Source: Zygnema circumcarinatum SAG 698-1b (Eukaryota > Plantae > Zygnematophyceae). Taken from it: a DNA stretch of 64,000 bases. A program made the position numbers and the translations under genes. Shown piece by piece: positions 14,701-55,989 of this stretch (position 1 is its first letter; each line of letters begins with the position of its first letter). The notes below the pieces were generated by a model. The model was not told where the DNA came from, did no database searches, and saw only the letters and a program-made list of their open reading frames with translations. The stretch spans positions 1,860,001 through 1,924,000 of the forward strand of contig CM074820.1 in NCBI GenBank assembly GCA_037447605.1, in the 5' to 3' direction.

Positions 14701-14972
14701 CCTGCTGTTCTTCGTCTAATGCGAACGGTAAACATTCGTCATGTGAATGGCTAGAAACGGGAGCGTTCCCTCCAGGATGAGCATTTCCAGTAGTGCGAAT
14801 ATCCGCTTCAGGTGTGGTAACTCGAATGTTTCGAGCACCCCCTGCTCCTTTACGAGCACTCGATGGCACATTTTCACTCCTAAAGCCTTCTGCAGGTTCA
14901 GCGCCCCTAAATCTGCAAAAAGAAAATGATAGGTTTTCACGTATCAGCCGGCAAGACACGGGGTGACATATG

Positions 14973-15042
<70 letters not shown>

Positions 15043-18000: not shown

Positions 18001-18860
18001 ACATGGATGACACCATGTCGCCCCTATGCATACAAACATGCATGTACGGACCATGGAGCTGCTACACACTATCGGAACAACATCCGGTTGTCCAAGTCCC
18101 AAAAATTATCAACAGGGCCTTCTTTCCAAGTTTCTGCAGAATTTGAGTCAATCAGGAAGCAAGAAAAGAGACACAAGAGACGTAGTGGACAGGGAATGGC
18201 AGGGCCAGGGCGAGCGCGCGGACGGGGGCGCGGTCGCGGGCGAGGGAGAGGGAGAGGGAGAGGGAGAGGGAGAGGGAGAGGGGNNNNNNNNNNGAGGGAG
18301 CGGGAGAGCGAGAGGGAAAGGAAGAGAGAGAGGGAGAGAGGGAGGGGCAGGGAGAGGGAGAAGGAGAGGGATAGGGAGAGGAAGGCAGAGGGAGAAGGAG
18401 AGGGAGGACGGTGGAGAAGGGGGAGAGACAGAGGGAGAAGCAGAGGGAGAGGAAGAGGGAGAGGCAGAGGGAGAGGGAGAGGCAGATGGGAAGAAAGAGA
18501 GAGTGAGGGTGGGGGCATACGCCTGCGCAAACTCCGTACCTTCACAATCTCCAGAAGGCGAATGATGTTAGGGTGATTGGCACGTTTCAATATGGCGATT
18601 TCTGATTCCAAACTTTCTTGCAACTTCCTGTTGAGACTGTCTGTCGCAATCTCTTTGATGGCCACCTCCATGCCGTGAACGTGGTGCCGCCCCTTCCAAA
18701 CCACTGCGAACGAGCCCGACCCTATCTTCTGCGTCACAATGTAATCTCCAATCATCTGACCAATCACCTGCTGCTGCTGCTGCTGCTTGGAAGGCATGGC
18801 TGTCTGAACAGATGGGGGCTGCGCTCGTCTCGGAGGCGGAGGAGGGGGCTGCTGGCTCAT
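11740..18860 (-). CDS. ATG1: Autophagy-initiating Ser/Thr kinase ATG1
   Basis: Exons approx. 18540-18860, 17831-17948, 17337-17395, 17029-17093, 16487-16580, 16158-16238, 15759-15867, 15308-15362, 14290-14912, ~13740-13967, 13206-~13369, 12639-12948, 12350-12420, 11740-11970. Motifs [41 protein letters not shown]8-interacting EREYVVV, and plant ATG1 C-terminus ([21 protein letters not shown]). Confidence 0.95.
12008..12330. repeat. (GGGAGTGA/GTGA)n simple repeat in an ATG1 intron
   Basis: Direct inspection. Confidence 0.9.
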
Positions 18861-19746
18861 CTTGGAGCCTATTCTTCAGTGTCATGCCTAAGCCTGCCTT
18901 CTTAGAAGGCAAATTCTCAAAGAAATTGGGCAAAATTGGCTATCAGAGCCGCCGCCTCACATCCCTGCAACGTTCAAAATCTCTGCAGTTCTGTCAAATT
19001 TTTGCCTCACGAGATCAATACTCGAGTGTGTGGATCACCAGGGTCGTTCAATTGCAAGCTTTAAGCGCCTGCATGGCAGCCATGGTCGCGCTGCTGTCAA
19101 GCTTCGAGCAGCTTTTAACGTCGGGCAGGTTTGAGAGGCTGTCCTGCGCACAGGTGGCCGGTCCCAATGGCGGGGATGGATGGCCATGGGATGCATGCGC
19201 ATGGATGACATGACCATGGCCATGGCCTGCATGCGCATGGGCATGCATGGGTATGTGTACGGTCATGGGCATGGGCATGGGTCTTTGGACCCTAAGCCCA
19301 AGGCGTGCCAGACACGCCGGGCTTCCAATACCTATGGGAGATTCTTTTTTCTTTTGTCGGTGGAATATTTTTGTTGAGGTAAAATACTTCTTAGTGGATA
19401 GGGCTGAGACAAAAAGGTTATTGAGGCAAACGTGGCAAAAGGAAAGGTAATAAGTAGTTCACACGGACCAATATTGGCTCGTTCGTGGTGAGTAGAATTG
19501 GTCGCTCATATTCTGCCCGGAAAAGTATCGGCACGGACAGGTTTCTTTGGATCTGAAATATTTTACGGGCAGGTCGAGTCAGTGTCGAGTCAGAAATGCT
19601 GTTCCGTACATATACTGTCAAGTTGGATTTGGATTGAGCCATCCGTACAGTAATCTTGCGAAATCGAACGAATGACCGTCAGATGTGGTGACGTGGTAAA
19701 GATCGACAGGCCTGTGGTCATTAGTGGAGCCACGTCATAAGCACAT

Positions 19747-20025: not shown

Positions 20026-20871
20026 ATTGGGGCAGGGGCAAAATTGCCCGTTTGTACCCGAAAGCACTGGAGCGTGTGGTTTATTGCTGCGCACGTGTTC
20101 GATCTGGCAGACTTGAAAATTGGGGTGTAAATTTGAAGTTTGTCTGTAGAGCAAGCAAAGCAGTCCTTTGCGACCAGTTCCTCGTGGTTCCCCATGATGA
20201 AGTTGTCCATGTACAGGCCATCGTGAGATCAATGCCATTTTCCCCTTTCAAGCAAAGCAGAAAGTGAAGGGATGTGGCATGGATCTCTCAATGGCGAGGC
20301 CACCAAATGTTCTTGGACAAAACTGCGGTTTTGAAAGTTTATTTTATTGTGAAGCCATAATCTTGGATTTCTGATGTAAATGGAATGGAATTTCTTATGT
20401 TTTCAACCTATATATGTATTCCTATGTATACAACCTATGTATGTACCTATGTATGTATGTACTCCTTATGTATATGTACACAACTTTCCACAATCCAAAA
20501 TGTTACGGTAATATCACGGCAATGTACTGCTGGAGTGCTGTCCGTACGAATCTAACTGGAATTCCATGTGAAAATCTGGGAGGCCAGTGTGAAAGTTTAG
20601 TTTGACGGCCATCGTGCAGTTACCGTTGGGAGCAGTCAAATGTCGTCGCCATTGCGCTCTGATTGGCCAACCGACGGCGCGTCCGCGAATACTCGCCTGC
20701 GATTGGCTGGTTCTTGCGATCTATGTCGTTGGGAATCCAGGTAACTGGAACTGGAACTCGGAGCATGGGTCTTGGAAGCATGGAGTCTTGGAAGCATTGA
20801 GTCTTGGAAGTAGGCGTTAGGGAACAGCTCCTGCTCGAGGGTCCGGAGAGGGCAGAGGAGGAGACGCAGCC

Positions 20872-23139
20872 ATGGCGAGGCTGACCTTGCTTGCTGCCGC
20901 TCTTTTCGCTCTTTTGTGTGTCGCAGGTTGGAAATCCTGGCCTAAATCTGACATTTTTTTTGTTGATTTGTGATAAATTACAACGTATGTGATGCTGATG
21001 TATCGGGACATATCGGCACCATAATGCGCGGATATGCTGTACATGCATGCAACCTGCTCGTGCTTCTTCCTGCATTGGATGCCGTTTTTTCAAAAAATTA
21101 AAAAACTTTCTCTAAAACTTTGCCGACCCCTATGCTTTCTATTTTTATCTCGAATATCTGTCAATTCCGTTTCAGTTTCAGTTTCAGTTTCTTTTCGTTG
21201 GTTCTGAAACCTGCCCCTTTTTACCTGCTCGCAGGAGTTGCTGCTGATGCGAAAGAGGGGAAACTGCAGATCGGAGTGAAAGTAAGCTCTGATTCCTTTC
21301 ACTTGTATGCTGCGCTTTGCAGAATTCCTTTCTGCCTTTTTGTTCTTTACATTGTTTTCCGTCTGGCTTGATGTCTCTGGCTGGCTGCTCTTTGCTACAT
21401 TCGTATCTGATATTTGTGGCTCGTATGAATGTGCAGTTTAGGCCAAAAAAATGCGAAGTGAAGGCGCATGCAGGTGATAAGGTGAAAGTTCACTACAGGG
21501 TGAGCTGCTACCTCTCTCTCCCTGTCACTCTCGCACTCGCATTCTCCTTCCTCCTGCCTACTCCTCTCTTCTGCCTCTTCCTCCCCCTGCTCCCTTTCTC
21601 CGTTTCCTGCTGGCTCCTCTACTTCCGTACCTTACCCGGTTTCCTGTCGTCCGCGTTTTTTTTGCCTTGCTAATGTAGAAAATTGAAGCATCAAACAATT
21701 GTTAATTGTTTAATGTTCATGTAAATAGGACACTAACAGTAAAGGTAACTCATCAACCACCAACATATATCTCAAAAAGTGAATGCATTTTTCGTGAGAT
21801 CCTAACTACATCAAAGATGCAATTCTTTTTCCTGCAATTGCGAGGCTTTTCTAGGAAAGGTGAACAAGCCCTCAGGCATGTGAATTTGTTTTTCTAATTC
21901 GAGTTTTAATATTTTATGTTTTATTATATGCCTTTCAGGGTAGCTTGACGGACGGAACGGAATTCGACTCAAGCTACGGGAGAGGAGACCCACTTGAGTT
22001 CACTTTGGGCGAGGGAATGGTCATTAAAGGTAAGGACACCCCTCTCTCTCTCTCTCGTCTCCCCCCTATCTCTGTCTCTCTCTCTCTCTCTCTCAAGCAG
22101 AATGCCCTGTTTCTGGTCGTACATTAGTTATGAGAATAGAGCGGTATGTTTCCTGGATGTTGATTCACATGTGTATGAAGCTTAGAGTTTTCTGATTAGT
22201 GCTACACATTTAAGATTCTTGGGAGAGAGAAAGCAGTGGTGCAAGGTTTGGGGCCGAGTAGGAGGGGTGAATACTGACTTAAAGTCATTTCAGCATGCTT
22301 GATAAAGTCAAGTTTGTGTGTATGGTCGAGGATCACCTCTCTACTCACTTGCAAGCTTCAAGATCTCGTGTTTAGATATTTTCAGAAGCCTCATTTTTTT
22401 ATGGGTTGAAAATTGTTTCGTGGTTTCGTCACATATTGGGTGCAAACTGACCCTTTCAACTGTCCTCTTTTGCTGGATGACTGAACTCTTTTACATGTGA
22501 ACAGGTTGGGATCAGGGACTTGCCGGTGCATGCTTGGGTGAGAAAAGGAAGTTGAAGATTCCTGCACACCTTGGATATGGCGCTAGCGGGTCTCCTCCGA
22601 AAATTCCAGGTACCTCACTTTTGTCTTTTGCTGTCATTGTGTTGAGAAGGCAGTGAACAACACCAGCTGGAAAAATGTCGTTGAGGTTATGCTGGATTGA
22701 ATGGTGAGCCTTCTTGAGATTGAAATATTCAGGTAGCATGAGAAACGTTTTGGGAAAGGAGGAGAGAGAGCATGGGAACGGAGTTGGATAGCACGAGGGA
22801 GGAGGGAGGATGAAGGGGAGGTAGAGGGAGGAGGAGACTAGGGTGAATTGGGGCTGGGGCCAGAAAGGAGAATGGAGAAGGTGAGGGAGAGAAAAAGGGA
22901 TACGGAAGGGAGGTGAAAGGGTAGAGATAGAGAGGGGGAAAGGGAGAGGGCGGGAGAGGGAGAGGCAAGAGGGAGGGAGACGGGGAGAGGGATGGGGGAA
23001 GGGGCGAGAGAGTGTTTGAGAGAGATAAAGCTCTGAATGACGTCGGTTTGCAATTGCAGGTGGGGCGACTCTCATTTTCGAGACTCAGCTTATGGGTGTG
23101 AATGGTGTCATGTATGAGCCGGAAGATACCGAGTTGTGA
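20872..23139 (+). CDS. FKBP15: ER-luminal FKBP-type peptidyl-prolyl isomerase (FKBP15/FKBP2-like)
   Basis: Exons 20872-20926, 21235-21281, 21437-21499, 21939-22029, 22505-22609, 23060-23139. Signal peptide [59 protein letters not shown] and C-terminal DTEL. Confidence 0.95.
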
Positions 23140-24202
23140 GCGGTAGAAGGGGAGGCTCTTTTCTCTCTTTGAATTATGTCCTGTTTTTCAAAAGCATTTC
23201 TTGAAGAAGTATTTCCAGAGGGAGAGGGAGAAGGAAATTGGCAGAATGTTATACTATCCTTTTCGGTAATGACTTTACAAAAAAGGAAACCAAGCCAAAA
23301 ATCTTTTGTCCGAAAAAAGCGACAGCAGAAGTGGCATGCCCCACATTGGTGCACAGACAGGCACTTGCCCACACGTGACAGCACATAACCGAAACTAGAT
23401 TAGTGGCAGCGCATTTGTGCACCGCAAGACACCGCCAGAAGGCCCCCCTTTAAACATATGAAACAACAAACCAAATGTCAAAAGCGACTGTCTGGATGGA
23501 CCAAAACACGTGAATAATAAGATAGAGAATCATTTCCCCGACGCCTGAAACATTTCATGGGGCATATTCCAAAACAATCCCGACGCATCCGCTGTGCACG
23601 AGGGCTTCTATGTGTAGCCCCCCCTCTCTCATTATCCATGGATGTTCAAATGCGTAGTGTCTATTGTTGTGTCAGAACCTGAAAAGTAGACAAACCAGAA
23701 CCTGCTATTTCGTCAAAGCGCAGCTCCGCCTACCCTTTCAGCCACCCAAAGGAGCGCTTAAATGCTACAGTCACAACGCACGACTTCTCTTTTTGAACGT
23801 GCCCATCTTTAACTGCCGCAACTACAAGCATTTCGCAATGCTCGGGTTAAATCACTGTGACAAATTTCTCTCCTCACATTCTGCCATTGCGCCCCAATCC
23901 ATCGTTTTAAGGATCACCTGAAAGGCAACGACGCGAACACAGTTGGAAGAAAGCGCACGGAGGCAAAAGGTGCAGGACTAGTGACGGTTGTTGAGTAAAA
24001 GATGGAAAGTATAGCAGGGTGAAGGTCAAGCTTGAACAATACTTCGTTTCGATGCGACATGAAGGAAAGTGTAGTTGACTAGTTCACGTATACCTTTATC
24101 CTACTCTTGGTAGGGGGACCCATGGGGTAAGGCTTCAACCATGATCGCTACATTCCATCAAGCCACATTCATAACTCGATTTGTTTTCAACAATGTTTAG
24201 CC

Positions 24203-26449
24203 TCAAGAAAGAGTGCAGTCAGTCCCCGTACCTGACCAGCTGCTCTGAAAATCCCACGTCAGCAACTCTTGCTTTGAAATGACCCCTCCAGTAGCAGCAG
24301 TAAAGCCGACGTACGCGCTGGTCACGTCACGGCAATCGCCGCACAATCGCAAGATGTCGCACAGCGCCGCCTTGCGAGTGAGCAGCGGCGCGGACGGCTT
24401 CGAGGAAGCTTCGCTGCTTAGGTACACTCTCCAAAGCTTGGCCCCTCCGTCGTAGTCCACCCACGCGTGCAGGGCGGAAGTGAGGTTGGAAAGAAGAGGG
24501 CTTTCTTGAAGAGCGGCGGTTCGTTTGAAGTTTTCGCGTATGCCCACATGAGGGGCGGGCTCCCCCAAATCAATGTTCCCGAAAATGTCGAATGTTATGG
24601 CCACACTGCCCACTGCAAGAGGAGGAGTTCTGAGGTACGAGTACGCAAGAGAGCCGCCTGTCGATCTTCCAAAGTCGCTCATGTTCGCGTTTGAAGTGAG
24701 AAGGAAGAATGTGATGCCATCAGCTTTTCGATCACTCAGGCTAGAAATTCTGAAAGAGAATTTTGTACTGAATGAAGCCGCGTGGCATCCGAGATCGTCG
24801 TCCTTTACTAACTCGATTGGATTACGATAATATGCGATTCCAGTACGATACTTAAAATCGGGTGTTAGTTGCACCGTGGTCCCATCGACGATCACTGCAG
24901 AATACTGGCATATTACTTCGCTTGAGGGAAAGGTCCCATATGTGAAGTTAGCCGGGCTGGGAAGTACTGACACCACACAAAGAGAAAACCAGAGATGTTC
25001 ATCAACGTGCCGTGCAAGAAGATATGAATTGGAACTCTGTGTGTTGACTATTGCGCCTCGAACAGGATAGAACCACAATGATGCACAACTCAAGTTTCAA
25101 GCTACCAAAGCATGCACCGACCTAGTATGCTCTCATCCATAAGTGAGCTTAGATGCTTCACTCTCCACCGTTCACTACCGACTCAATTTCAGTGAACTTT
25201 CACGAAAGATCGGCTGAAAGTTAAGGTATGCCTCTTCAAAATGTCCATAAGCATTGCACAGGTCGGACCATTGGATCGGCAACCATTGGACAACCATTGG
25301 ATGGCAATGGTTGGACTTCCAATGCTTCGCAACCATTCGAATGGTTGTTTCGGTCCGGCGCCAATGGTCCAAAACCATTGGATCCAATGAATATTCGAAT
25401 GGACCCAATGGTTGACAATTATTGAAGTCAAGGTTGTCAACGGTTGGCAACCCACCAAACACACATTGGACCCAATCTTGAATCCGCCAATGGTTCCGGA
25501 CCATTCCAATGGTGGCAACCATTGGATCCAACGGTTCCGAACCATTCGGATGGTTGTCAACCATTGGATCGAATGGTTCGGAACCATTCGAATGGTTGTC
25601 AACCATTGGATCCAATGGTTCCGAACCATTCGAATGGTTGATCCAATGGCCCGACTTGTATTGTAATGGGACTCCCAGATGCGAGTTTCCATTATTCAAG
25701 AGGGATGTGAATCAGGACTTTATGAAAACTCGGCCTTAAGAATATTTCAGTTGTCAGTTCTAGGCAGCGAATCCATTCGTTTTAGCTACAAGACCGTAGT
25801 CTTTTACTAGTGACGATATCAAGTTATCAACAAGTGCAGAAACTCGGCAACACAAAGTCATCCTGAGCACTTTTTTCGAAAAAAGACTTACCAGAGAGCG
25901 AGCAGGAATTGTCCACCAACGTAGATCCTGCATCGCACACACATGTCAATGTGTCCATTGAACATGTTCCATGGCCCCCACATGCTCCTTTGGGCTGTTC
26001 GCTGTTACAGTTCCGCTGGCAGTCTGCCAAGCTCCTTTGTGGTTGGTCAGTTCCACACCCCAGTTTCGTGTCGTAGGAATAAATGCAGTTGCCAGCTGCA
26101 GAAGTGCAAAAAGGCCGGTTCAAACCAAACGTAATTTCCAGCGGACCAGATAAATAGTTTCTGTCGAAATAACTATACGGGCTGGAGACATGGAGCCTTA
26201 GAGGACCAGTGAAGTAGTTGTCTCGAAAGTCCCTGGTACAGCAAAGTAGGAGGGTGCGTAAGAACAAGGAAGTGAGGGAATTCGAATGTCATCTGGTCAT
26301 TCTCTTTCATTACATTCACAGCCCAAAGTGAAGCAATGGAGGATGCAAGTAGAATCAAATACAGCGTAAAAGAAAGCTTGTTGGCGTTAAGGAAGGTGAG
26401 CACGGACGAGATAAGAAGAAATTCCAACTCCCTTTGAGACTCCCTTGAG

Positions 26450-26536
<87 letters not shown>

Positions 26537-29500
26537 ACTCAAGGCTTAAGCAAAGGGACGTTTCCAACATGAATCCAAACTTGACTACAACTGATTTGGT
26601 GATTCCATTCACGTATTGACACTCTCCAATCCCTCCGAACACGGTGCCGGAAATGTCCTAAAAGCAATTTCGACATATCGTCACATCGCTCAAAGTGACG
26701 CAAAAATTGTTGAGGCAACCCACAATATACCGCTAAACCTCTACCGAATGACAAGCTGCTCTTAAGAAGTTTCATCAAAACTTCCGTTCAATAAGAAGCC
26801 AAAAAAGAAGGAACCATAGAAAGAGGTGCTTACAAAAATTCCAAGTTCTGCAGATTGCTCATCGACTCCGGAATGCGCCCACTGAGTTGATTATTGGCTA
26901 GAGATCTACCAATAAAGACGTGCAAGAACAATCAAAATGTGGCAAAACCGGTAATGAAAACATGCAGAAGTTAGAATTTGTCCAATTTGTTTCGCAGTAC
27001 ATTTTGCAGAAACAAGATAGGAAAAGAATAACAGTTTTCTGGTGCGGGGAAAGAACGGACGATTAGCAGCACACTGCTCAAAGGGAAACGAGAATGGCCT
27101 TGAGTAAACCCACAACAAACCGCCAACCATTTATGATACGAAGAATGTTCTTCCAGTAGTTTCATGAAATCTTGAGGTGAATAACAAGCCAAAGGAGAAG
27201 GAACCATAAAACATGGAACTTACAGCGTCTGAAGCCACTTTAGATTGCTGATCGAATCCGGAATGCTCCCACTGAGTTGATTGTCCTTTAGAAATCTACC
27301 AAATAACGACAGAGAAGACAGATTAACACGTGGCAAAACGGGCAATGGAAGTGTGCAAAAGTTGGAATCGGTACGTACTGCAATCCGCAGTGATTTTTAA
27401 AAAGCAATCTATTCTCATTGGGTAGATTAGACCTTAGGTGTCTACCAACAAAAGAGATGGAAGAATAGGGACTGATATGTCAAAGAACGAGCAATAGAGA
27501 TCTGCAGATTATAATTTATACACTGGATACAAGCTAAAGTCCAGCCACAGAACAAAAAGCATCAAACAACGAACAGTTATTCAGTAGTTTCATGAATCTT
27601 GAGGCGAATAGCGAGCCAAAGGTGAAGGAACTATATACATAACATGGTGCTTACAGCACTCGCATGTCATGTAGTTTGTTGATCGACTCCGGAATGCTCC
27701 CAGTGAGTTGATTGTTGTTTAGATACCTATCAAACAAAGAAATTGGAGACAAACCAACACGTGGAAAAAAGGGCAATGTAGGTGTGAAAAAGTAAGAACT
27801 GGTAGGCACTGCAACTCGCACTAAATTTTGCAAAGCAATCTACTCTCATTGAATAGATAAAACCTTAGTTGTCAACCAACTAAAGAGATGGAAGAATAGA
27901 TCAACACGTCGCAAAAACAAGCTATGTAGATGTTCAGATAAGTATTTATACACTGCAATTCGCAAAAAAATTCTGCAGAGGTCAGTGTCCTCGAGAGGTC
28001 TCATCAGATCTTGCGCCGAATCGCAGGCCAAAGACGAAGGAATCATACAAAATGGTACTTACATATCTCTCATTTTAGTTAGATTGCCGATCGACCCCGG
28101 AATGCTCCCACTGAGGTGATTGTTTTGTAGAAATCTAACAAACAAAGAGACTGAAGATAAATCAACAAGTGACATATATAACGGGAGATACAGGTGTGCA
28201 GAAGTTAGGGTCGATAGGCACTGCAATTCACAGAATGTTTTTGCAAGTTGAAATTTGAAATTTAGCAGCAGAACACCAAGTTTTAAACTAAAAACTTTGC
28301 TTCACAAATGTAATCAAATTTTGCGCAAAAAAAAGTCAAAGGAGAAAGGAATCATAAACTATTGTGCTTACAGCGCATCCAAATTACGTAGATTGCTGAT
28401 CGACTCCGGAATGCTCCCAGTGAGTTGATTGTTGCTCAAAAGTCTACCAAATAAAGACATTCAAGACAGATCAACCCGTGAGGTTAGAAAAGGTAGGCAC
28501 TGGAAGTCATAAAATCTTTTTTTGTAGATTCAAGATAAGGGATAATAAACGAGTCAAGATAATTAACCTAAATTGACTCAGGGAAGAGAATTGTGACAAT
28601 TAGGATCACGCTGCTCGAAGGGCCAACAGGACACCAAGCTTCAAACGGAGAACCTCACAGGTTTCATCAAATTTTGCGCCGAGTAACAAGTCAAAGAAGA
28701 AAGGAATCATAGAAAATGGTGCTTACAGTGTTTGTAATTTACGAAGATTACCGATCGACTCCGGAATTCTACCAGTGAATCGATTACCATCTAGCGGTCT
28801 ACCAAACAAGGACATGCAAGAATAGATCAGCACGTGGAAAAACGGGCAGTGTTGAAATATTTGTACAAAGTAATTCGCAGAAAATTTCGCAGCGCAAAGT
28901 TAACGAGACAATTAACGTTTCTGATGTAGAGCAAATAATAATAATAATTGGACACTCAATGTCATGCTGCTCAATGGGATACAAGCAATACTTTCAAAGG
29001 GACAGAGCACAAAGCCTCAAACGAAGAATTGTTCTTCACAGGTTTCCTCACATCTTGAGGCAAATAGCAAGCCAAAGGAGAGGGAACCATAGAACGTGTG
29101 CTTACAGCGCATACAAATTAGTTAAGTTGCCGATCGACTCTGGAATGCTTCCACTGAGTTGATTGAAGAATAGATATCTACCAAAAAAAGTGATTGACGA
29201 TAGATCAACAAGTGTGAAAGCGGGAAATATAGGTGTGCAGAAGTTAGAATTAGTAGGCACCGCAATTCACAAAAAAACTTGCAGAGTAAAAACTTTTAAA
29301 AAACTTAACGTTTCCTGACACAAGGAAGAGAACTGGGACAATTAAGATCACGCTGCTCGAAGAGATACAAACTATATTTAAGAAATACAGCAACATAACA
29401 CCAAGCTTCAAACAAAAACCTGTTCTCAAAAAGTTTCATCAAATCTTCCACCACAAGCTAAAGAAGAAGGAACCATACAAAATGGTGCTTACAAAAATTT

Positions 29501-31234
29501 CAATTTGTATAGACGACTGATCGACTCCGGAATGCTCCCATTGAGTTGATTACCGGATAGATATCTACCAAATAAAGTCATTGAAGGTAGGTCAACAAGT
29601 GAGAAAACGGGAAATGTAGGTTCAGGTGTTAGAATTGCTAGAAAGCTGCTCTGCTCCAAGAGCTTCAAGTTATAATTCAAGGAATACAAAAAAAAAAAAA
29701 CTAACTTTAAATGAAGAACTGTTCTCAAGAGGTTTCATCAAATCTTGCGCCGAATAACAAACAAAAGGAGAAGGAACCATACAAAATGGTGCTTACAAAT
29801 ATTCCAAGCTTTGTAGTTTGGTAATCGACTCCGGAATGCTCCCACTGAGTTGATTGTTGGACAAAGATCTGCCACACAAAGACATTGAAGACATCAACAC
29901 GTGGCGAAACGGGCAATAGAGGTCTGCAAAAGTTAGAATTGGTAGCGCGGCCATCAAAGCCGAGATAAGTAACAAATCATTGTTTGCATTTGATGAGGAG
30001 ACCAGATCTAAACTTGTTGTCCAAGCGTTTACAACACGAAGGGCTGCCCCTTCATCACCCCCCATCGAAAGAACGAGACGAGGGAAACTGGGCCATACAA
30101 CTCACGCTCTCCTCCAAAATTTACGTACCAAGAGGAAATGAACCAGTCAAATAGGCCATTTGGCTTACTTTCTTCCTAAGTCCCTAGGGCCTACCTCCCC
30201 TATCTGTCATAAAAACGTTCAGCTCTACGGTCACCCGTACGGACGGTCAGCACCCTCAGTACCGTCATACGGTTCTGACTCAAACTGCGAAAAATCAGAT
30301 CAGCAACTCATCGGCATTGCGCAATATCGTGTCATCATACGCTCAAAAAGACTAGAAGAAAATACAGAAAAAAATCGTCCGAAAAACAGCATCTACAGTG
30401 GTAAAAAAAAATGTCCTTACAATTCAACCACACGGCCATTGGCATTGCAAGTCACTCCTTGCCATTCCGTACAGGTGTTCAGATCCGCGGACCATGAGGC
30501 CATGTATGACCATGTCGGATACGTCCAGTTCCCGCTCACTTTCAGTTCCAAGAGAGCGCTCTCTGCGAGTGGAAAACACCAAGCAATGAACGGATTCACA
30601 TTTGAGATTGTGCAATTCATGAACCTCGTCTAGGCGAGGGTTCAGCGCGTGAAGACTTTGAAAATCGAAACGAGGTTTCAAGGTGATGGTACTCGCTACT
30701 TAGAGACTGACATCAAGAACTCAACATCACACAAATATTCCCATTGCATCCAATTTTCTTCCACTACTTCGCAAAGGCCAAATCCGTACAATCATATGAG
30801 CGATTTTCTCACTTCACGCTCCCCTTAGCTTCTCCTACAGATTCAGCCCTATTAACGTGATTCCTTATCACTACATCACCCTCTCCCTCTTCTGCATCTT
30901 TAAGCCCCCATGGCATCTCGATTGAACTCTCTTCACTTCTTCCTTGATCCCTCGTGGCCCCACTCTCAAAGCCCTCATGCTTCACCTGCTCAGACCTTCC
31001 CTTTTGCAGGCTAATCTTTCTTATCTCTGTGCCTCTGCGGCATCACACCCGAATCCGAAGTCCTGAACCCTAATTATTTAATCCAACACAAGGCTCAGGG
31101 TTCAGGAGAGACGCACTGTCTGCAGCGTTAATGAGTTGGCCCACGACTGCCGTGGGGGCGCAGACCCTCATGGCCGCCGCCATATACAGCGCACAAAGCG
31201 ACAAACTGCGCCGCTGCGCCATCGCCCGCTTCAT
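24203..31234 (-). CDS. Secreted LRR-EGF-like-legume (L-type) lectin protein, paralog A (9 single-LRR exons)
   Basis: Signal exon 31117-31234; LRRNT exon 30421-30562 (D-KSALLELK..W..CTEWQGVTC). 72-nt LRR exons 29797-29868, 29493-29564, 29106-29177, 28727-28798, 28372-28443, 28063-28134, 27655-27726, 27224-27295, 26834-26905. LRR-cap/EGF exon 25892-26232 (CGGHGTC..CVCDAG); lectin exon 24232-24966 (SFSTKFSF, ADGITF, VAITFD, HVGI, AWVDYDG, VGFTAATG). The exact C-terminus is uncertain (read-through stop at 24203). Confidence 0.85.
25258..25659. mobile_element. ~400-bp foldback/MITE-like insertion made of nested palindromes, in an intron of paralog A
   Basis: TIRs ACAGGTCGGACCATTGGATC / GATCCAATGGCCCGACTTGT; flanks ATTGC / ATTGT; absent at the homologous position of paralog B (~34670). 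Confidence 0.8.
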
Positions 31235-33188
31235 GACCACTTCTTGTCTGAATGCCTTCTCGCCGCTCTGTGCCCCAATATCTCGATCCTTATAGATCCC
31301 TTTCCTCTCCTTCTCTCAAATTATTTATCAATGTAGTCCTCCAAATCCAGGAGAGCTCCACTCTCACGCTCTCCCGTCCTGGTTGACTCCCTTTCTCACG
31401 CTCTCCCTCTCACTTCCCCACCCCTCTCCCTCTATCTCACCTCTCTCTCACTTGTCTCTTTCTACCCCTCCTCCCTCGGCCAACCGCTCCTCCCTCGCCC
31501 AACCCCTCCTCCCCTCCCTCTCCCTCTCTGCTTCGCCTCCTCTCCTGTTCTCGCCTCCTCCCTCCCTCTCCCTACCTCCTTCTCCTCCTCTCCTGTTCTC
31601 GCCTCCTCCCTCCCTCTCCCTCTCTGCTTCGACTCCTCTCCTGTTCTCGCCTCCTCCCTCCCTCTCCCTCTCTGCTTCGACTCCTCTCCTGTTCTCGCCT
31701 CCTCCCTCCCTCCTCCCGCGCGAAAACCGCTCCGCCGTGCCGCGCTGTATCCGGCGGATCCCTTTTCCCTCCGCGCTGCCTCGTCATCGAACTTGAATCA
31801 CTCTCCGCCGTTCGATGGAACACGACCCACGTGCGGATTTTTGCCACGTGTCAATTTTCTTTTTTTCGCTCGCCAAGTCAATGTTTGGGCCAACTGAGGT
31901 CAACGGTTGGACCAACTGTTGTCCGCTTTCACCAATCGCGCCGCCGCCTCACCTTCAAAGATGTACGGCTGCCGCGCTGGCTCGCAGCGGCCGACCGCGG
32001 TGACGGCGGTGACGGCGGTAACTGCGACGACGGCGGTCACCGCGGTGACTGCGGTGGCCGCCGCTCCACGGGAACTTCCGACTAAAGGACAACCAGACTC
32101 CACGTGGCCCATTGATATCTCGCCACGTGTTCTACTGCCTCCTTGACCGTTGGATGCAGGGGGCAGAAGGCGATCGGACGGCTCTCAACGACCGCAGTGG
32201 CGCATGGCCATTGGGTCCGCCCAACACCCCCATACATCTGCGGCCCATCTGTACTGATCCGTACGGTTCCGAATCCGCCCCGATCATCACAGAAACTTCA
32301 AAAGTGAGGCGAGCCGCGAGACCTTTGTAGCTGACCTCAGGCGATAGAACATGCAATCATGAACATGCACGAGACAATTTCTGTGCAGTTTGTTGCAACA
32401 CGTTCTCGTTGCAATGTCCACAATGCGATTCAACATTGGTCCAGAGACAAGCATTAGTCCACGTGTTAAGAGACCCAACCGAAACAAGACCAATGGGGCA
32501 GCACACATGCAACACAAGACATGGCAAAGAAACTCACTTTTCCAAACATAAAGATGCTGATGATGGCCAACAAACCGAAATTCAAAACTAATGGCTTGGA
32601 AAACATGGAATTCAACATGTCTTCCAATCCTGATGCATTCGCTATGCGTGAGGGCTTGCATGTGTAGGCCCCTCCCTCCATCATTATGCCATAGATGCTC
32701 ATGTGCACAAGGACTATTGTTGTATCGGAACCTGAAAAGTAGACGATTAGAACCTCCCTGTGGTAGACTGTGCATGGACATCATCTGCTGATGACCCATG
32801 GCCATGGCTGGGGGCACATGTGACTCATGCGTGCCTAACGAGGTACATGGGTCTCATGACTAGTTCCAATTGCAATTTCTTTAAAGCGCAGCTCCGCCTA
32901 TCCTTTAAAAAGGTGCGCTGAAAACGCTACACTCACTACGCACGTCTTCCCTTTTAGGGCATGTCCATATTTAACTGCCGCCTCTTCAAACCTTTTGCAA
33001 TGATAGGGTTAAAATCAATGTGACAGATTTCTCTCCTCACAGTCTGCCATTACGCCCCAATCCATCGCTTCAAGGAACACCTGAAAGGCAACGAAGCGAA
33101 CAGAGTTGGAGAAAAGCGTACGGAGGCAAAAGGTGCAGGACTAAAGACGGTTGTTGAGTAAAAGATGGAAAGCATAGCAGGGTGAAGG

Positions 33189-36100
33189 TCAAGCTTGAAC
33201 AATAGTTGCGTCTGGATTCGACATGAAGGACATTTAAGTTGACAAGGAAGGAGGTCTGAGAATAAAACTTCGTTAAATGCTGGGCAATACGCTGGAGTTA
33301 ACTCACACTGCAAGCGTCAATCATTGAACTTGCTGTTTCAGTGTTTTCCAAGGCCTAAGCCGAGAATGACCGCCAAGTGAGGGGACCCCTTCTGGGATTA
33401 CATTGTTTACTTATACCTTTATCCTCACAGAGGGGCGGCGAATGGGTTTAGAGTTTAATCATGATCGGTACATTCAATCACGGGACAGTGGTCCCACAAC
33501 TCGATATGTTTCGAACAATGTTTTGCCTCAAGAAAGAGTGCAGTCGTCCCCGTACCTGACCAGCTGCTCTGAAAGTCCCACGTCAGCACCTCTTGCTTTG
33601 AAATGACCCCTCCAGTCGCCGCGCTAAACCCGATGTACGCGCTTGTCACGTCACGGCACTCGCCGCACAATCGCAGGACGTCGCACAGCGCCGCCTTGCG
33701 AGTGAGCAGCGGCGCGGACGGCTTCGAGGAAGCTTCGCTGTTTAGGTACACTCTCCAGAGCTTGGCCCCTCCGTCGTAGTCCACCCACGCGTGCAGGGCG
33801 GAAGTGAGGTTGGAAAGAAGAGGGCTTTCTTGAAGAGCGGCGGTTCGTTTGAAGTTTTCGCGTATGCCCACATGAGGGGCGGGCTCCCCCAAATCAACGT
33901 TCCCGAAAGTGTCGAATGTTATGGCCACACTGCCCACTGCAAGAGGAGGAGTTCTGAGGTACGAGTACGCAAGAGTGCCGCCTGTCGATCTTCCAAAGTC
34001 GCTCATGTTCGCGTTTGAAGAGAGAAGGAAAAATGTGATGCCATCAGCGATCCGAGCACTCAGGCTAGAAATTTGAAATGAGAACTTTGTGCTGAATGAA
34101 GCCGCGTGGCATCCGAGAACGTCGTCCTTTAATAACTCGATTGGATCTCGATAATATGCAACTCCAGTATGATATTTAAAATCGGGTGTTAGTTGCAATG
34201 TTGTCTCGTTAAGGATCACTGCAGAATACTGGCATATTACTTCACTTGAAGGAAAGGTCCGATATGAGAAATTAACCGGGCTGGGAAGGACTGACCACCA
34301 CACAACGAGACAACGAGACATTCATCAACGTGCCGTGCGAGAAGATATGAATTGAAAAAAGTGCTTTTTCTCTAGCGCCTCAAAAAGGCTTGAATCACAC
34401 TGATGCATAGCTAAAGTTTCAAGCTACTATGAAAAAACAACCTCAATTGGCAAAAGATTATTTTGAACAAAGGGGACCCAAGATTGGGACGTATTGTCAT
34501 ATTGAGAGATAAAGAGGACCTATAAATCATGCACCGATTCAGTATGCTTCAATCCATAAGTGAGCTTAGAAGGTACACTGTTCGCCGTTTAGTATCGACT
34601 CGAGTTCAGTTAACTTTCGAGAAAGTTTTAATGATAGTCAGGATATGTCTCTTCAAAATGTCCACAGGGATTGTAATGGGACTTCAAGGTGTGAGTTTCC
34701 ATTCTATTCAAAAGCAATGTGGATGAGGTCATTATGGAAGTTCTGCTTTTAGATTATTTCCTCTCATACTTCTTGGGCAGCGCATCCATTCGTTTAGCTA
34801 CAAGGCAAAAAACTTCTACAATGAAACGTACAAGTGACGATATCGAGTTATCAACACGTGCAGACAATAACCGACAGACTTAATATTCATTCTGAGCAAG
34901 TTTCGTGAGAAAGACTTACCAGAACGAAAGCAGGAATTATTCACTAACGTATATCCTGTATCGCACATACATGTAAATGTGTCCACTGAACATGTTCCGT
35001 GGCCTCCGCATGCTCCTTTGGGCTGTTCGCTGTTACAGAACTGCTGGCAGTCTGCCAAGTATTTTTGTCCTTGGTCATATTCACACCCCAGTTTGGTGTC
35101 GTAGGAATAAATGCAGTTGTCATAAGCACGTGCGCACACTTTCCGGCCAGATCTATCCGTAATTTCCACAGGACCAGACAAATAATTATCGCCGAGACCA
35201 ATCACCAGGGCTGAAACTTGAAGCCTTAGAGAACCAGTAAGGTAGTTGTCTCTCAAATCCCTGGTGCAGCAAATTAGGAAGGTGCATAAGATCAAGTGAG
35301 CGAATTCGACTGTCATCTGATCATCCTTCTTTATTTCACTCACTGCCCAACGTGAGGATAGCATCAAGGGTTGCAATGAAATTCAAGAACGGGCTTACAC
35401 GAATGCTAGTCGGCATTAAGAAAAAGGGGACGGACGAGATGAGAAGAAAACCGTTTGAGACTCCGTTAACTCGAGACTTAAGCTAACAGGCGTTTCCAAC
35501 ATGAACATGAATCCATACATGCCTACAACTGACATGGTTATGCCATGTTACGTTATGTTATTTAGCAACTTGCTTCTGAGAGTATAGCACAACTGATTTC
35601 CAAAATCGATGCGCACTACTTTTTAAAGTTTTTTGGTATGCTTTGAATCCATCCGAACACGGGGCCGGTGTTGTCCTACAAGCAATTTCGTCAAACCTTG
35701 AGTCGAACAACAAGCCAACAAAAAAGAAAAAGAAGAAGACGGAAAGGAAAACAATCAACGTTTCCTGATACAGGGAAACGAAAGGTCGATTAACATCCCG
35801 CCGTTCAGAGTAACGCAAAAATATTTGAGGGAACCCACCACAAACCGCTAAGCCTCTACAAAATGACAAGCTGTTCGTAAGAAGTTTCAGAAAATCTGAC
35901 CTGAATAACAAAAGAAACAGAAAAGGAATCATTGGAAGTGGCGCTTACAGCCATTGCAAATTCTGCAGATTGCTGATCGACTCCGGAATGCTCCTAGTGA
36001 TTCGATTGTGGGTCAGAGATCTGTCAATCAAAGACGTGCAAGAACAAATGAATACGCGGCAAACCGATAGTCAAAATATGCAGAAATTAGAATTGGTACT

Positions 36101-39100
36101 TTGTTTTGCAGAACATTTTGCAAAATCAGAAACAAGACGGGAAAACAAGTACCATTTCCGGAGGGGGGAAAAGGCCGGAGAATTAACAGCATTCGCGCAA
36201 AGAGAAGAGAATTGAATGCTTTGAGGAAACCCAAAGCAGACAGCCAAACCTTTACAATACGAAGAACTGTACTTTTGTAGTTTCATGAAATCTTGAGGAT
36301 AACAAGCCAAAGGAGAAGGAATCATAGTATATGGTGCTTACAACAATTGGATGTCTTGTAGATTGCCAATCGACTCCGGAATGCTCCCACTGAGTTGATT
36401 GCTATCTAGTAATCTTCAAAATAGAGAGATTGACGCTACATCAACACGTGAAAGAACGGGAACTGTAGAAGTGCAGATGTTAAAATTGGTGGGTACTGTA
36501 ATTCACATAAATCGTTTCAAAGTCATATAAAGGAAAACATAACGTTTCCTGATGCATGGAAGTGGACTGTGACAGTAAGTATTGCGTTGCTCAAACGAAT
36601 ACAAGCTTTGCTTTAAGGAATCCGGAAACAAAACACCACGTTTCAAACTAAGAACTGTCTCTCTCTCTCTTTCTTTCTCTCTCTCTCTCTCTCTGTCTCT
36701 CTCCCTCTCTCTCTCTACTTTTGTGGTTTCATGAAATCTTGAGGCGGATAGCAAGCCAAAGGAGAAATAACCATAGTATATGGTGCTTACATCACTTGCA
36801 TGTTTTGTAGATTGCCAATCGATTCCGGAATGCTCCCACTGAGTTGATTATTTCTTATAAATCTACCAATCAAACACATTAAAGATAGTAAACTATTAAG
36901 TTTATAAGAGCGCAAATGTTAGAATTAGTAGGCATTGCAATTAAAATACGTTTTAGCAGAATAAAAATAATGAAAAAATTTACGATTCCTTATGCAAGGA
37001 AAGGACTGGGAAAATTAAAGAATGAACCATAAATGATAGCGCTTACACCGTTTTCAACCTATGTAGATTGCCGATCGAATTCGGAATGTTTCCAATGAGT
37101 TTATTATCGCTTAGAGTTCTGGCAAACAAAGAGATTGAAGATATATTAACATGTGGCAAAGCGAGCAATGAAAATGTGCAGAAGGAAATTGACTGCCACT
37201 GCGATCCGCAGTAACGTTTGCACAAACGAGGTATGGATTAAAATATTGTTTGCATATCATGACCTAAAAACCCTAAAAACCCGAGACCGGATCTAAAAGT
37301 TGTGGCAGACGAAGAAGTAATAGGAGAAAATGAGGCTTACATATATTCCAAGGACTGCAGATTGCCGATCGACTCCGGAATGATACCACTGAGTGAATTC
37401 TGGCCTGTATATCTACCAACCAGGGGTGCAAGAACAAATCAAATTCTGGCAAAATAAATGTGCAAAAGTTAGAATTGGAGGAGACTGCAATCCGCAGTAC
37501 GATTTTCATTGACTAAAGGAAAAAATGAACGTTTTCTGATGAAGGGAAAAGAACGGCCACATCAGCATCACGTCGCTCGAAGAGATGCGAAAAACATTTG
37601 AAGGAACTCACAACAGACCGCTGAGACTCGAGAAAATGAAAAGCCGTTCTAAAGAAGTTTAACCAAAATCTTGAGCTGGAGAATATAGTAAGAAGGAATA
37701 GTATAAAAAGTGGTGCTTACAGATATCTAACGTTCTTCAAATTGCCGATCGACTCCGGAATGCTCCCACTGAGTTGGTTACTCGATAGTTCTCTACCAAT
37801 AAAAGACGTGGCAAAACAGATAATGAAAACAGGCAAAAATTTACAGTTGGTACACTTTGTTTCGCAGTACATTTTGCAAAAACAAGATAGAAAAAGAAGT
37901 ACTGTTTCCTGACGGAGGGAAAACAACGGAAAAAGAGAAACGAGAATGCCTTGAGGAAATCGACAGCAGACCGCCAAACCGCTAAAATACGAAGGACTGT
38001 TCTCAAGAGGTTCAAGCAAATCTTAAGCCGAATAAAAGCCAAAGACGAAGGAATCATACGAAATGGTGCTTACAAATATTCCAAGTTTGTTAGATTGCCG
38101 ATCGACTCCGGAATGTTCCCACTGAGTTTATTATTGTATAGAGATCTATCAACCAAAGGGATGCGCGAACAGGTCAACACGTAAAAAAAAAACCCGGGTA
38201 AGGGTGTGCAGATATGAATTGGTACACTGACTGCATTTTGCAGAAAAAAATTCAGAGTCAAGATACGGAGATAATTTACGATCCTAATGCAGGAGGTCAA
38301 AGAACTGGAACAATAAGGGTTACGCTCAAAGAAATAGAATTTATATTTTCAGGAATCTGACAACAGAACACCAAGATTTGATAGAAGAACTGTTCTTAAG
38401 TAGTTTCATGAAATCTTGAGGAGAAAAACAAGCAAGCCAAATCTTAAGAAGAAGGAATAATAGAAAATGATGCTTACAGCTCTCGCAAGTATTGTAGATT
38501 GCCGATCGACTCCGGAATGCTCCCATTGAGTTGATTACTGGCTAGATATCTACCAACCAAGGAGATGCAAGAATAGATCAAAACGTGGGAAAAATGAGGA
38601 CTGTAAATGTGCAGCTTTGAGTTTGTACACGCAGTTCGCAGAAAATTTTGCAGAGTCAAGTAAATATCGTTTTCTAATGCAGGGAAAGAATTGGGATAAT
38701 CAGCGTCAAGCCGCTCAAAAAGGAACAAGCTATACTTTCAGGAATCCTGCAACAGAACACCAAGCCTCGAACGAAGAACTCTATAAGTAGTTTCATGAAA
38801 TCTTGGGGAGGAAACATAGAACATGGGGCTTACAATGATTTCAAGTTGTGTAGATTGCTAATTGACTCCGGAATGCTCCCACTGAGTTGATTATTGGATA
38901 GATATCTACCAAAAAAAAAAAAAGATGAAGAGAGATCAACAGGGGACAAAACGGGCAATGTAGGAGTGCAGATGTTAGAATTCGGACTGCAAATCACAGA
39001 AACTTTTGCAGATTCAAGATAAGGAATAGTTTAACGTTTCCTAATGTAGGGAAAAGGGCTTGGACAATAGGAACACACTGCTCGCAGGGGTACAAGCTAC

Positions 39101-40381
39101 CTAAGGAATACAGCGACAAATCTCAAGATGTCTCATTAGATATTGCGCCGAACAATAAGCCAAAGAAGGAGGAACGTAGAATATGGTGCTTACATCCATT
39201 GCAAGTTTTGTAAATTGCCGATCGACTCCGAAATGCTCCCATTGAGATGATTACTGTTTAGAGATCTACCAAACAAAGAGGTTGAAGATATGTCAACACG
39301 TGGCCAGACGGGAAATGACAATGTGCAGAAGTTGGAATTGGTAGGCGCTGCGATCCACGGCATATTTTGCACAGACGAGGTATGGAAACGAATATTTTCT
39401 TCATTTGGCGGATCTAAAGTTGTTGCAGTGCATTTCAAGACATGCTGAAACGATATTGCGTCTCCTGCTTGGTAGGAGCCATGACTAGGATTTCGTCCAC
39501 AAGAAAAAAATGCAGAAGAGAATCATCCGGAAAACGGTAACAAAATGGAAAGAATAGTCCTTACAATTGCCAAACACGGGCTTCGCCATCGCACCACACT
39601 CCTTGCCATTCCGTACAGTCGTTCAGAGCCGCGGACCATGAGGCCACGGACGACGAGTTCGGATACTTCCAGCTCGCTTTCAGTTCCAAGAGAGCGATTT
39701 CTGCGAGTGGAAACCACCAAACAATGAACGGATTCACATTTGAGATCGTGCAATTCACGAACCTCCCCTAGACGAGAGTTCAGCTCGTGAAGACTCTGAA
39801 AATTGACACGAGGGTTCAAGGTGACGAAACTCGCAACTCAGAGACTGGCATAAAACTCAACGTCACACAAAACATTCCATGCCACATTATGTCCCACCCG
39901 ATTTTCTCCCATTACTTGTCAAAGCCAAAACCCGTGCAACCATAGTGAGCGAGTTTGTCAATAGTCACTTCCCTGAAATTATCCCAAAGATCAGACCACG
40001 AAGCCTTGTCACTACATCACCCCTCTTTCTTCTGCAACTTAAAGCCCCCATGGCATCTCCCTTGAATTCTCGACAGTCTTTCCTTGAGCCCTCGTGGCTG
40101 CACCCGTAAGCCCCCATGGCTTTCCCCCATGGTCGCACTCCCGTTTACCCCTTTCGCAGGCCAATCCTCCTTATCTGTATGCCTCTGCGGCAGCACACCC
40201 GAAGTCCCCTGAACCCTAATTCCTTTATCTCAACACAAGGCTCAGGGTTCAGGAGAGACGCACTGTCTGCAGCGTTTATTACTTGGCCCACGACGGCCGC
40301 GGGAGCGCAGACCGCCATGGCCGCCGACAGAGTTAGCGCGCAAAGTGACAAAACTCGCCGCTGCGCTTTCGTCCGTTCCAT
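33189..40381 (-). CDS. Secreted LRR-EGF-like-legume lectin protein, paralog B (10 single-LRR exons)
   Basis: Signal exon 40264-40381; LRRNT exon 39565-39700. 72-nt LRR exons 39194-39265, 38834-38905, 38478-38549, 38074-38145, 37721-37792, 37341-37412, 37047-37118, 36791-36862, 36342-36413, 35949-36020. EGF exon 34920-35260; lectin exon 33556-34290; putative last mini-exon 33189-33211 (DATIVQA*). Confidence 0.85.
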
Positions 40382-42811: not shown

Positions 42812-46793
<3,982 letters not shown>

Positions 46794-47740
46794 GGGAGGG
46801 AGAGAAAGGAAGGCGAGGAAGGAGGGAGACGAAGGAGGGAGAGGAGGGAGGGAGAGGGAGGAGGAAGAGGGAGGAGGGAGAGGAAGGAGAGAAAGGGAGG
46901 AGGGAGAGGGAGAGGGAGGAGGGAGAGGGGGAATGAGAGGGCGAGGGGGAGGAGGGAGAGGGGGAGGGGGAGGGGGGGAAAGAGGGAGGAGGAGAGGAAA
47001 GGGGGAGAGGGAGGAAGGAAAGGGAGGAAGAGGGGGAAAGCAGTGGGAGAAGGAGAGGAATACGGGAGAAGGGTGAAGGAGGATGGAAAGAGGAGGGCGA
47101 GGGAGGAGGGAGAGAGAGGAAGGAGAGGGAGAGGGGGGAAGCAGAGGGAAAAGGAGAGGGAAACACGGAAAAAAATGAAAGGAAGAAAGCGGGAGAGGCA
47201 GAGAGGGAGATCGGAGGAAGGTCGAGAGAGTCCTGCCCTTAGAGAGAGAGAGAGGAGAAAGGGAGAGAGAGAGTGGGAGAGGGTGCACAGCGGTAAGTTG
47301 AGGATATGACCAGCCGTCAATTCGAAAGGAGCCTTTCCCGCGAAGTCAAAGGCGCTCACATGCTCGCTGTTCGAAATCCAGTCAAACAAATTAGAACAGG
47401 AAACCCGTAAACAATTACTGCCGATTACAGGCCTATACTGCCTGTATATGTATATATTCCTCCCTATATGTGTATTTCCAGTTTAACGCTATCACGCTCT
47501 GTTTTGTCACTGGAAAAAACGGTATAGGAAACGGAAGAGGGAACGGATCGGGAACACGAACGGAACTGGTAACACAGAGACTCATGTATTTGATAGGGCG
47601 ACGGAGAGTAATCCTCGCCGTCCGATGATTGCGACGGCCGATCTCGACCGTCATTTATCGCTTGTCACAAATTCTTGATCATTTTGTACCGTCCGATTTA
47701 TACGGAGAAATGCAGTCTGACAGTTCTACGCCTTTTCAAA

Positions 47741-52400: not shown

Positions 52401-52726
52401 TCTCCCTTCTGTCTTTCCTCTCTCTTTCCCTCTACTCCCGCCTCTCCCTCTACTCCCGCCTCTCCCTCCCCTCCCTCCCTTAACTCTCCTAGCTCCCTCC
52501 GCTCTCCCTTTAACCCCTCCTCCCTATCCAACCTCTCCGCTCTACCTCCCAGCATTCCTCTCCCACCCTCACCTCCACCTATTCCCTCCCTCCCTCCAGC
52601 TGCAACGCCTTCCGTCACCTTCCTTCCTGCTGAAAGCCTCCTCTTTTTCAATGGCCTTCCTGGGGATACTTGTCGTTCATCCCCAGGCTGACATGTAGCA
52701 TCCTCTTCCTGGCGTATCCTCTTCAT
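49486..52726 (-). CDS. ESF2: Pre-rRNA processing factor ESF2/ABT1
   Basis: Exons 51637-52726, 51347-51410, 51026-51093, 50740-50829, 50391-50521, 49748-49903, 49486-49524. Motifs GVCYLSRVPPHMKP, RIYLAPE, FTEGWVEF, DLWNIKYLRKFKWDHLTEE. Confidence 0.93.
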
Positions 52727-54823: not shown

Positions 54824-54857
<34 letters not shown>

Positions 54858-55986: not shown

Positions 55987-55989
55987 GTA

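Follow-up and report, generated by a model that had tools for sequence, protein, structure and literature searches.

Two intact tandem genes of Zygnema circumcarinatum, A and B, encode arrays of plant-type LRRs in which each repeat occupies a single 72-nt exon. These paralogues have probably been diversified by an old germ-line exchange of exon-intron modules together with positive selection on the concave-face codons, and A is expressed as a fixed mRNA string. As the examined RNA has one fixed exon order, this is an evolutionary diversification of a known kind and not a shuffling machine, and the two genes give no evidence for an adaptive-immunity-like machine.

Architecture of genes A and B

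The window, i.e. the whole 64-kb stretch of DNA that was analysed, contains both genes on the minus strand. Their products (664 and 686 aa, respectively) are 71% identical and present the same domain order: a signal peptide, LRRNT_2, 9 (A) or 10 (B) LRRs of the plant type, an EGF-like domain joined to a capping LRR, a legume lectin and a last exon predicted to encode three residues. The features are located in the window as follows.

Gene A, 31234 to 23907, minus strand: complete open frame, 664 aa
31117..31234, minus: A exon 1, signal peptide, predicted start ATG; hydrophobic N-terminus; join to exon 2 in 4 RNA runs; transcript contigs reach past 31390
30421..30562, minus: A exon 2, LRR N-terminal cap; Pfam LRRNT_2 above cut-off; both junctions in RNA
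26834..29868, minus: A LRR array, nine 72-nt exons; splice-aware scan; all consecutive junctions in RNA, no skipping
A LRR exons, minus: 29797-29868, 29493-29564, 29106-29177, 28727-28798, 28372-28443, 28063-28134, 27655-27726, 27224-27295, 26834-26905
25892..26232, minus: A degenerate last LRR/cap and EGF-like exon; Pfam EGF matches below cut-off, E 4e-4; loose ends of A9 continue into it in 4/4 RNA runs
24232..24966, minus: A legume (L-type) lectin exon; Pfam Lectin_legB E 4e-32; PDB legume lectins; predicted splicing
23907..23917, minus: A last coding exon (predicted; three residues and stop); position of acceptor and stop conserved between A and B
Gene B, 40381 to 33070, minus strand: complete open frame, 686 aa
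40264..40381, minus: B exon 1, encoding the signal peptide; 80% identity with its counterpart in A
39565..39700, minus: B LRR N-terminal cap exon; Pfam LRRNT_2 above cut-off
35949..39265, minus: B LRR array, ten 72-nt exons; splice-aware scan; predicted junctions
B LRR exons, minus: 39194-39265, 38834-38905, 38478-38549, 38074-38145, 37721-37792, 37341-37412, 37047-37118, 36791-36862, 36342-36413, 35949-36020
34920..35260, minus: B LRR cap and EGF-like exon; Pfam EGF E 5e-4, just short of cut-off
33556..34290, minus: B legume lectin exon; Pfam Lectin_legB E 7e-34
33070..33080, minus: B last coding exon with stop (predicted)

In the last LRR exon of B, a Gly of the motif is changed to Arg. The lectin domain matches solved legume lectins in the PDB, with E-values down to 7e-11. 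In the sequence alignment, the Ala-Asp-Gly loop and the Asp, Asn, Asp and His of the metal loop are aligned with those of the legume lectins, and the first metal ligand, Glu, is replaced by Thr.

Downstream of the lectin exons, no kinase motif, conserved hydrophobic segment or membrane anchor was found in either gene. The stop is predicted three residues past the lectin exon in both A and B, the 3' ends being predictions. Through a second acceptor near 32731, B, unlike A, could acquire a hydrophobic tail. Little space is available 3' of either gene, A being followed by an FKBP-like gene on the opposite strand (from about 22,000) and B by the promoter of A. The 24-residue plant-type LRR, LRRNT_2 and the signal peptide are features of plant LRR-RLKs and LRR-RLPs, whose transmembrane helix or kinase was not found in A and B as delimited by their predicted 3' ends. 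LRRNT, LRR, EGF-like and Lectin_legB are the only domains seen, and a ROC-COR GTPase domain is absent. Judged on their sequence, the products look secreted and do not look like membrane receptors.

The same architecture was found in P0153, a homologue translated from an mRNA contig of run SRR8128907 (35-36% identical), which also stops right past the lectin. Because P0153 shares both the architecture and the ending, the predicted secreted LRR-EGF-lectin form constitutes a family. Homologue searches were run exon by exon. The EGF and lectin exons gave no matches in the word-index search, which is limited by length. With HMMER, lectins with 29-41% identity were retrieved; those checked were mostly bacterial-type multidomain proteins, and no plant-type LRR protein was present among the 150 matches listed. 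Metagenome loci provided distant lectins (26-41%), and the Atlas search generic LRR clusters below 0.9. The LRR-EGF-lectin architecture was not found in the literature searched, nor, together with the exon arrays, in the text and supplements of Feng 2024 (PMC11096116).

We infer that A and B are probably secreted two-headed binders, in which an LRR solenoid, variable on its concave face, is followed by an EGF-like spacer and a legume lectin. They may function as recognition proteins of the wall or mucilage, the lectin tethering the protein to a glycan and the LRRs binding a changing protein, foreign or self. Such proteins would point to a kinase-free arms race of extracellular recognition in land-plant relatives.

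Exon modules and transcripts

All 19 LRR exons (9 in A and 10 in B) are exactly 72 nt long, bounded by AG and GT, and in phase 2 on both sides. This number, length and phase had been claimed in a preliminary description and are borne out by the splice-aware scan; the variable flanking words that it listed were all recovered in the exons. Its picture of a constant scaffold with variable flanks holds overall, with the correction that loop codons 19-20 vary too and that the helix mostly reads PESIGNL. Whole LRR exons are 56-86% identical to one another.

The claimed homology between introns was also recovered, with 55-79% identity across the 17 LRR-LRR introns in a MAFFT alignment. The mean alignment score of intron pairs was -4, vs. 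-149 for shuffled sequences, and profiles built from the donor and acceptor halves pick up nearly every module. Global pairwise intron identities are inflated (70% in the shuffled control) and were excluded from use. The acceptor halves of the introns following the LRRNT exons belong to the same intron family. The layout is modular as proposed, with an exon-to-exon spacing of 256-449 nt and not the ~320-480 bp initially given for the modules.

From the 342 possible exon-to-exon joins, 342 yield a hydrophobic junction codon, and the proposed frame symmetry is therefore real. Since each LRR is encoded by one 72-nt phase-2 exon, the gain, loss or swap of a repeat keeps the reading frame. The splice junction had in addition been placed inside the beta-strand. 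This agrees with the AlphaFold model of P0153 (single-sequence; mean pLDDT 60, mostly 60-90 in the LRR part), whose predicted strand covers repeat positions 23, 24 and 1-4, where the junction of A and B falls.

Profile searches with nhmmer on both strands returned exactly the 19 exons and two decayed remnants, without any spare LRR exon in introns or on the antisense strand, and a reservoir of pseudo-exons is thus ruled out. As for a system of the lamprey VLR type, no donor cassettes were found elsewhere in the window, and both germ-line genes are complete.

We then followed the transcripts of gene A in four RNA runs from four studies, mapped as contigs on 26600-31400 (min_share 1). The depth sits on exons and the joints are canonical; these runs are therefore transcript assemblies. 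Three runs contain every consecutive joint between exon 1 and A9 (ten joints, depth 60-365), whereas the fourth, at a depth of 10-22, contains six. The loose ends at A9 lead into the EGF exon each time. No exon-skipping joint was found in the four transcript-contig runs of gene A, assembled contigs being able to drop rare isoforms. As intron-retaining contigs survive at a depth of 2-26, isoforms that make up a few percent often come through, although assembly can remove small bubbles. One run (X20) displays a hole over A2-A4 with no bridging joint; filters can make such holes. A non-canonical joint from 28114 to 31095, seen in one run with a side of 27 nt, was rejected as an isoform of A: its 27-nt intron edge is identical in B, and it is probably a contig of a paralogue. 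In two runs, a loose end matches the first 12 nt of exon B9, which hints that B is transcribed too. As far as the contigs show, gene A yields a single major mRNA with a fixed string of exons, constitutively spliced from exon 1 to the EGF exon.

These data bear on a repertoire generated by regulated exon skipping, in which isoforms would acquire composite beta-strands like those of Ectocarpus ROCO genes. In its favour, all joins keep the frame and place a hydrophobic codon at the junction, the modelled strand straddles the junction, and up to nine splice variants are described for ROCO genes, whose exons share the 72-bp length and phase 2 (PMC11378527). However, the contigs of gene A from four studies present consecutive junctions only and do not support the alternative splicing put forward in the preliminary description. 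The LRR exons have uniform splice sites close to the consensus, neither mutually exclusive nor spare exons were detected, and the conserved RNA structure searched for around these exons gave a mean z of +0.4 and a trivial consensus fold, with no docking-type fold. We consider such a repertoire improbable.

Age of the modules, probable conversion and selection

The introns flanking the modules differ by at least 22%, and by about 39% on average (mean differences: A, 0.37; B, 0.41; A vs. B, 0.40; minimum of 0.22 for the nearest pair). Orthologous introns of A and B that align well have a p of 0.15-0.24. The intron tree is star-like, with internal branches representing 14% of its length, and its firm forks are three: iA6 with iA7; iA8 with iB4 and iB9; and the latter group with iB5. 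Judged from the flank distances and the star-like tree, most module copies arose around the time of the A/B duplication or earlier.

The number and order of repeats are not collinear between the paralogues (9 vs. 10), the supported pairs being iA8 with iB9/iB4 and A4 with B3 in a poorly resolved tree. In the sequences compared, the array ends appear to be roughly orthologous and the middles remodelled, and it is for the middles that the lack of position-wise orthology claimed earlier is confirmed. B also holds an internal copy of the penultimate-intron type. In addition, introns A6-A7 and A7-A8 are sisters (support 98/96) and carry the duplicated remnant of a deleted module.

27413..27526, minus: remnant of a decayed module within intron A7-A8; additional acceptor half, AG intact, about 19 nt exon-like; unused in RNA
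27843..27980, minus: sister remnant in intron A6-A7; acceptor AG lost

The ancestry of B5 is a mosaic, its acceptor side being near A9/B10 and its donor side not. Mantel tests on donor, acceptor and exon halves, addressing the duplication unit and its breakpoints, were all weak (r up to 0.33; one p of 0.04 among ten). A modular origin by duplication of exon and intron, as initially claimed, is supported. Because the modules are old and mostly without position-wise A/B orthology, unequal exchange must have lengthened and shortened the arrays in the course of evolution. Exon-intron modules would add, remove and swap repeats through unequal crossing-over or conversion, a star-like burst of module copies in the germ line probably being followed by separate gains and losses in A and B.

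Six DNA runs (four samples from three studies) contain 97-98% of the words of the A stretch, introns included, the samples being possibly one strain or close relatives; exons A2-A4 and their introns are therefore present in each DNA sample. No allelic variation in the number of repeats of A was seen in these samples, which may be of one strain.

Silent sites are not equally variable along the exons. The 33-nt scaffold core (codons 5-15) has a silent rate of 0.23 of that of the introns, whereas the codons outside it reach 0.80-0.88 (p 4e-4 to 2e-5). Only 12 out of 114 fourfold sites of the core depart from the majority, vs. 26% for intron columns, and distant modules share exact runs of up to 38 nt. 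Codon bias is ruled out as a cause of this uniformity, as every synonymous codon is in use in the exons of A outside the LRRs, and the LRRs of P0153 vary at silent sites. RNA structure is likewise ruled out, no fold being conserved. Between the lectin exons of A and B, 5 mismatches were counted in 341 nt (98.5% identity) vs. 47 in the other 394, and this tract suggests gene conversion at the locus.

24356..24696 in A, shared with 33680-34020 in B, minus: probable gene-conversion tract in the lectin exon; permutation p 5e-5

The uniform core could be kept by short gene-conversion tracts or by selection on a splicing enhancer of this small exon; micro gene conversion confined to the core is the most likely explanation and was preferred over an enhancer. 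Homogenisation of the kind described for HNWD genes is limited to this 33-nt core, whole exons being only 56-86% identical. Going further, the scaffold, kept uniform by micro gene conversion in the many one-LRR exons of the genome, might serve as a recombination seed for exchanging ligand-facing parts of the strand inside secreted LRR mosaic genes as well as from one gene to another, at a pace sufficient for strain-level or condition-dependent binding repertoires; we regard this extension as unlikely.

Still less likely, and comparable in this respect to a repertoire made by splicing, is an ongoing shuffling of DNA seeded by the core, in which the number and order of cassettes would differ by strain or by cell as in HNWD. 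The silent uniformity of the core, the exact runs shared between distant modules (up to 38 nt), the conversion-like lectin tract and the mosaic B5 would all fit this reading. Nevertheless, no two modules are recent copies (minimum p 0.22), and concerted evolution would leave the repeats far more alike. Together with the 97-98% of the A stretch retained, introns included, in six DNA runs of four samples, the age of the modules speaks against the diversification by ongoing shuffling that had been proposed.

To the old exchange of modules is added selection on the repeats themselves. Five concave codons (repeat positions 22, 23, 1, 3 and 4) were fixed a priori. Under an MG94-type codon model with branch lengths taken from the intron flanks, which assumes one tree and is violated in this by conversion, their dN stands at 2.8-fold the rate of the introns, with a profile interval of about 2.1-3.8 (p 5e-13), and their omega at 2.3-2.8 (p 0.004-0.01); the dN of scaffold codons is 0.14. 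The result is robust to the removal of the two splice-adjacent codons (2.1-2.3, p 1e-5 or lower), is the same on a star tree, and stands under two frequency models and two trees. The excess of non-synonymous change expected at the concave positions is thus found. Substitutions at these five ligand-facing codons would have been fixed by positive selection, and five codons per repeat can now be named as targets for mutation.

The least probable alternative is that A and B are structural wall lectins whose concave codons are merely unconstrained, the excess arising from constrained introns or model error: the introns keep conserved motifs beside both splice sites and may not be neutral, and the sample is small (five codons in 19 sequences) with a divergence near saturation, but outside the core silent sites change about as fast as the introns (0.8-0.9) and the concave codons themselves have an omega above 1 (p 0.004-0.01), with two frequency models and two trees.

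Comparison with known systems

Same-phase exons, non-collinear paralogues and concave selection, which characterise germ-line exon-duplication LRR arrays of the ROCO/Tetrahymena type, are all found in A and B. The layout itself is already known: in brown algae, ROCO genes possess 72-bp phase-2 LRR exons with positive selection on the concave face and up to nine splice variants (Teng 2024, PMC11378527), and in Ectocarpus the introns of ROCO loci and their antisense strand harbour additional intact LRR exons (Zambounis 2012, PMC3341825). A and B share with these genes one LRR per 72-bp phase-2 exon, a similar 24-residue consensus, the concave selection and a number of repeats that varies between paralogues. 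The ROC-COR GTPase, the splice variants and the intact spare exons are features of ROCO, whereas A and B are LRR-EGF-lectins, predicted to be secreted, with no skipping seen (A) and decayed remnants.

Tetrahymena presents tandem arrays of 90-bp phase-2 LRR exons, ascribed to unequal crossing-over and ectopic recombination or conversion (Xiong 2019, PMC6564038). Tandem exons of fixed length with phase-2 junction codons are common to both systems. In contrast to the 90-bp unit, the thousands of genes and the near-identical exons across genes of this ciliate, the unit in A and B is 72 nt long and of the plant type, and their modules are old.

Land-plant extracellular LRR proteins and LRR-RLKs also have the plant-specific 24-residue LRR, the LRRNT_2 cap and an intron-rich LRR region. 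One-LRR-per-exon layouts occur in ERECTA and SERK genes. For LRR-RLKs of the ERECTA subfamily XIII-2, 26 introns are reported (PMC5296948). Unlike land-plant LRR-RLKs, A and B have no transmembrane or kinase domain, carry EGF and lectin domains after the LRRs, and their introns are still recognisable as mutual copies.

The fungal HNWD/het WD-repeat genes combine homogenised repeats with four positively selected codons (Paoletti 2007, PMC1805685), and the likeness lies in this homogenised scaffold with selection at few surface codons. They are however WD40 proteins, intracellular and NLR-like, with strong concerted evolution and allelic variation in repeat number, whereas only the 33-nt core is homogenised in A and B. 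Within the 71 Mb genome of Z. circumcarinatum, Lectin_legB occurs in 26 often lineage-specific domain architectures (Feng 2024, PMC11096116); like these mosaics, A and B join a legume lectin to other domains.

A and B therefore evolve like ROCO, Tetrahymena and fungal het genes, yet belong to none of these groups, having no ROC-COR, membrane anchor, kinase or donor library. With them, the exon-modular diversification of LRRs described in brown algae and ciliates also appears in a streptophyte alga, where the proteins concerned are apparently secreted LRR-EGF-lectins and positive selection was measured on their ligand face.

Lectin exons and introns of A and B

The lectin exons of the tandem paralogues A and B share a near-identical tract. 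GC3 is about 0.64 within this tract but lower in the 5' third of the exon, where it is 0.40-0.44. On the 3' side of the tract, GC3 is as high as inside it. Gene B also presents a second conserved acceptor downstream of its lectin exon. The tail that B would gain from this acceptor comprises 88 residues, including a hydrophobic stretch; in gene A, the equivalent frame reaches a stop after 15 residues. In the introns, we found an array of 42-nt units made of short palindromes and an orphan remnant of a donor half. The array, present only in gene A, is a fold-back or MITE-like insertion, and the EGF-lectin intron is therefore longer in A.

Features of genes A and B
24356-24696 (A) and 33680-34020 (B): near-identical lectin-exon tract (341 nt, 98.5% identity)
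32731-32465, minus: second acceptor, possible tail of B
25280-25641: palindromic array, EGF-lectin intron of A
35680-35726: donor-half remnant, last intron of B

Transcript runs on gene A

In run X20, exons A2-A4 (28727-29564) are not covered and a joint bridging them is also absent; either filtering removed the contig or the strain differs here. Run X7 displays a non-canonical joint (28114 to 31095, depth 40) connecting the edge of intron 1 to an LRR core. This joint probably comes from a paralogue transcript with the first intron retained or alternative.

Rest of the window

Positions 841-2532 and 2544-4235 form an exact direct duplication (1,692 nt, 100%). A 10-N gap lies within this region (at 3034). 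The duplication is likely an assembly artefact. An FKBP-type gene, convergent with gene A, was judged from its translated exons; seven further neighbours were named by eye from the ORF text.

Neighbouring genes
About 20700-22500, plus: FKBP-type prolyl isomerase
4760-6612: ferredoxin-NADP reductase
9975-10367: small LysM-like protein
12000-18933: ATG1-like kinase
42812-47288: RING/IBR-type E3 ligase
51563-52726: ESF2/ABT1-like protein
54087-56031: MTR4/HEN2-like helicase
57677-59210: serine racemase-like enzyme

Comparison with the homologue P0153

P0153, encoded by L001 (a transcript contig of run SRR8128907), has, like A and B, a predicted secreted LRR-EGF-lectin architecture. Its lectin domain is preceded by a proline-rich linker, and its LRR scaffold codons vary at silent sites.
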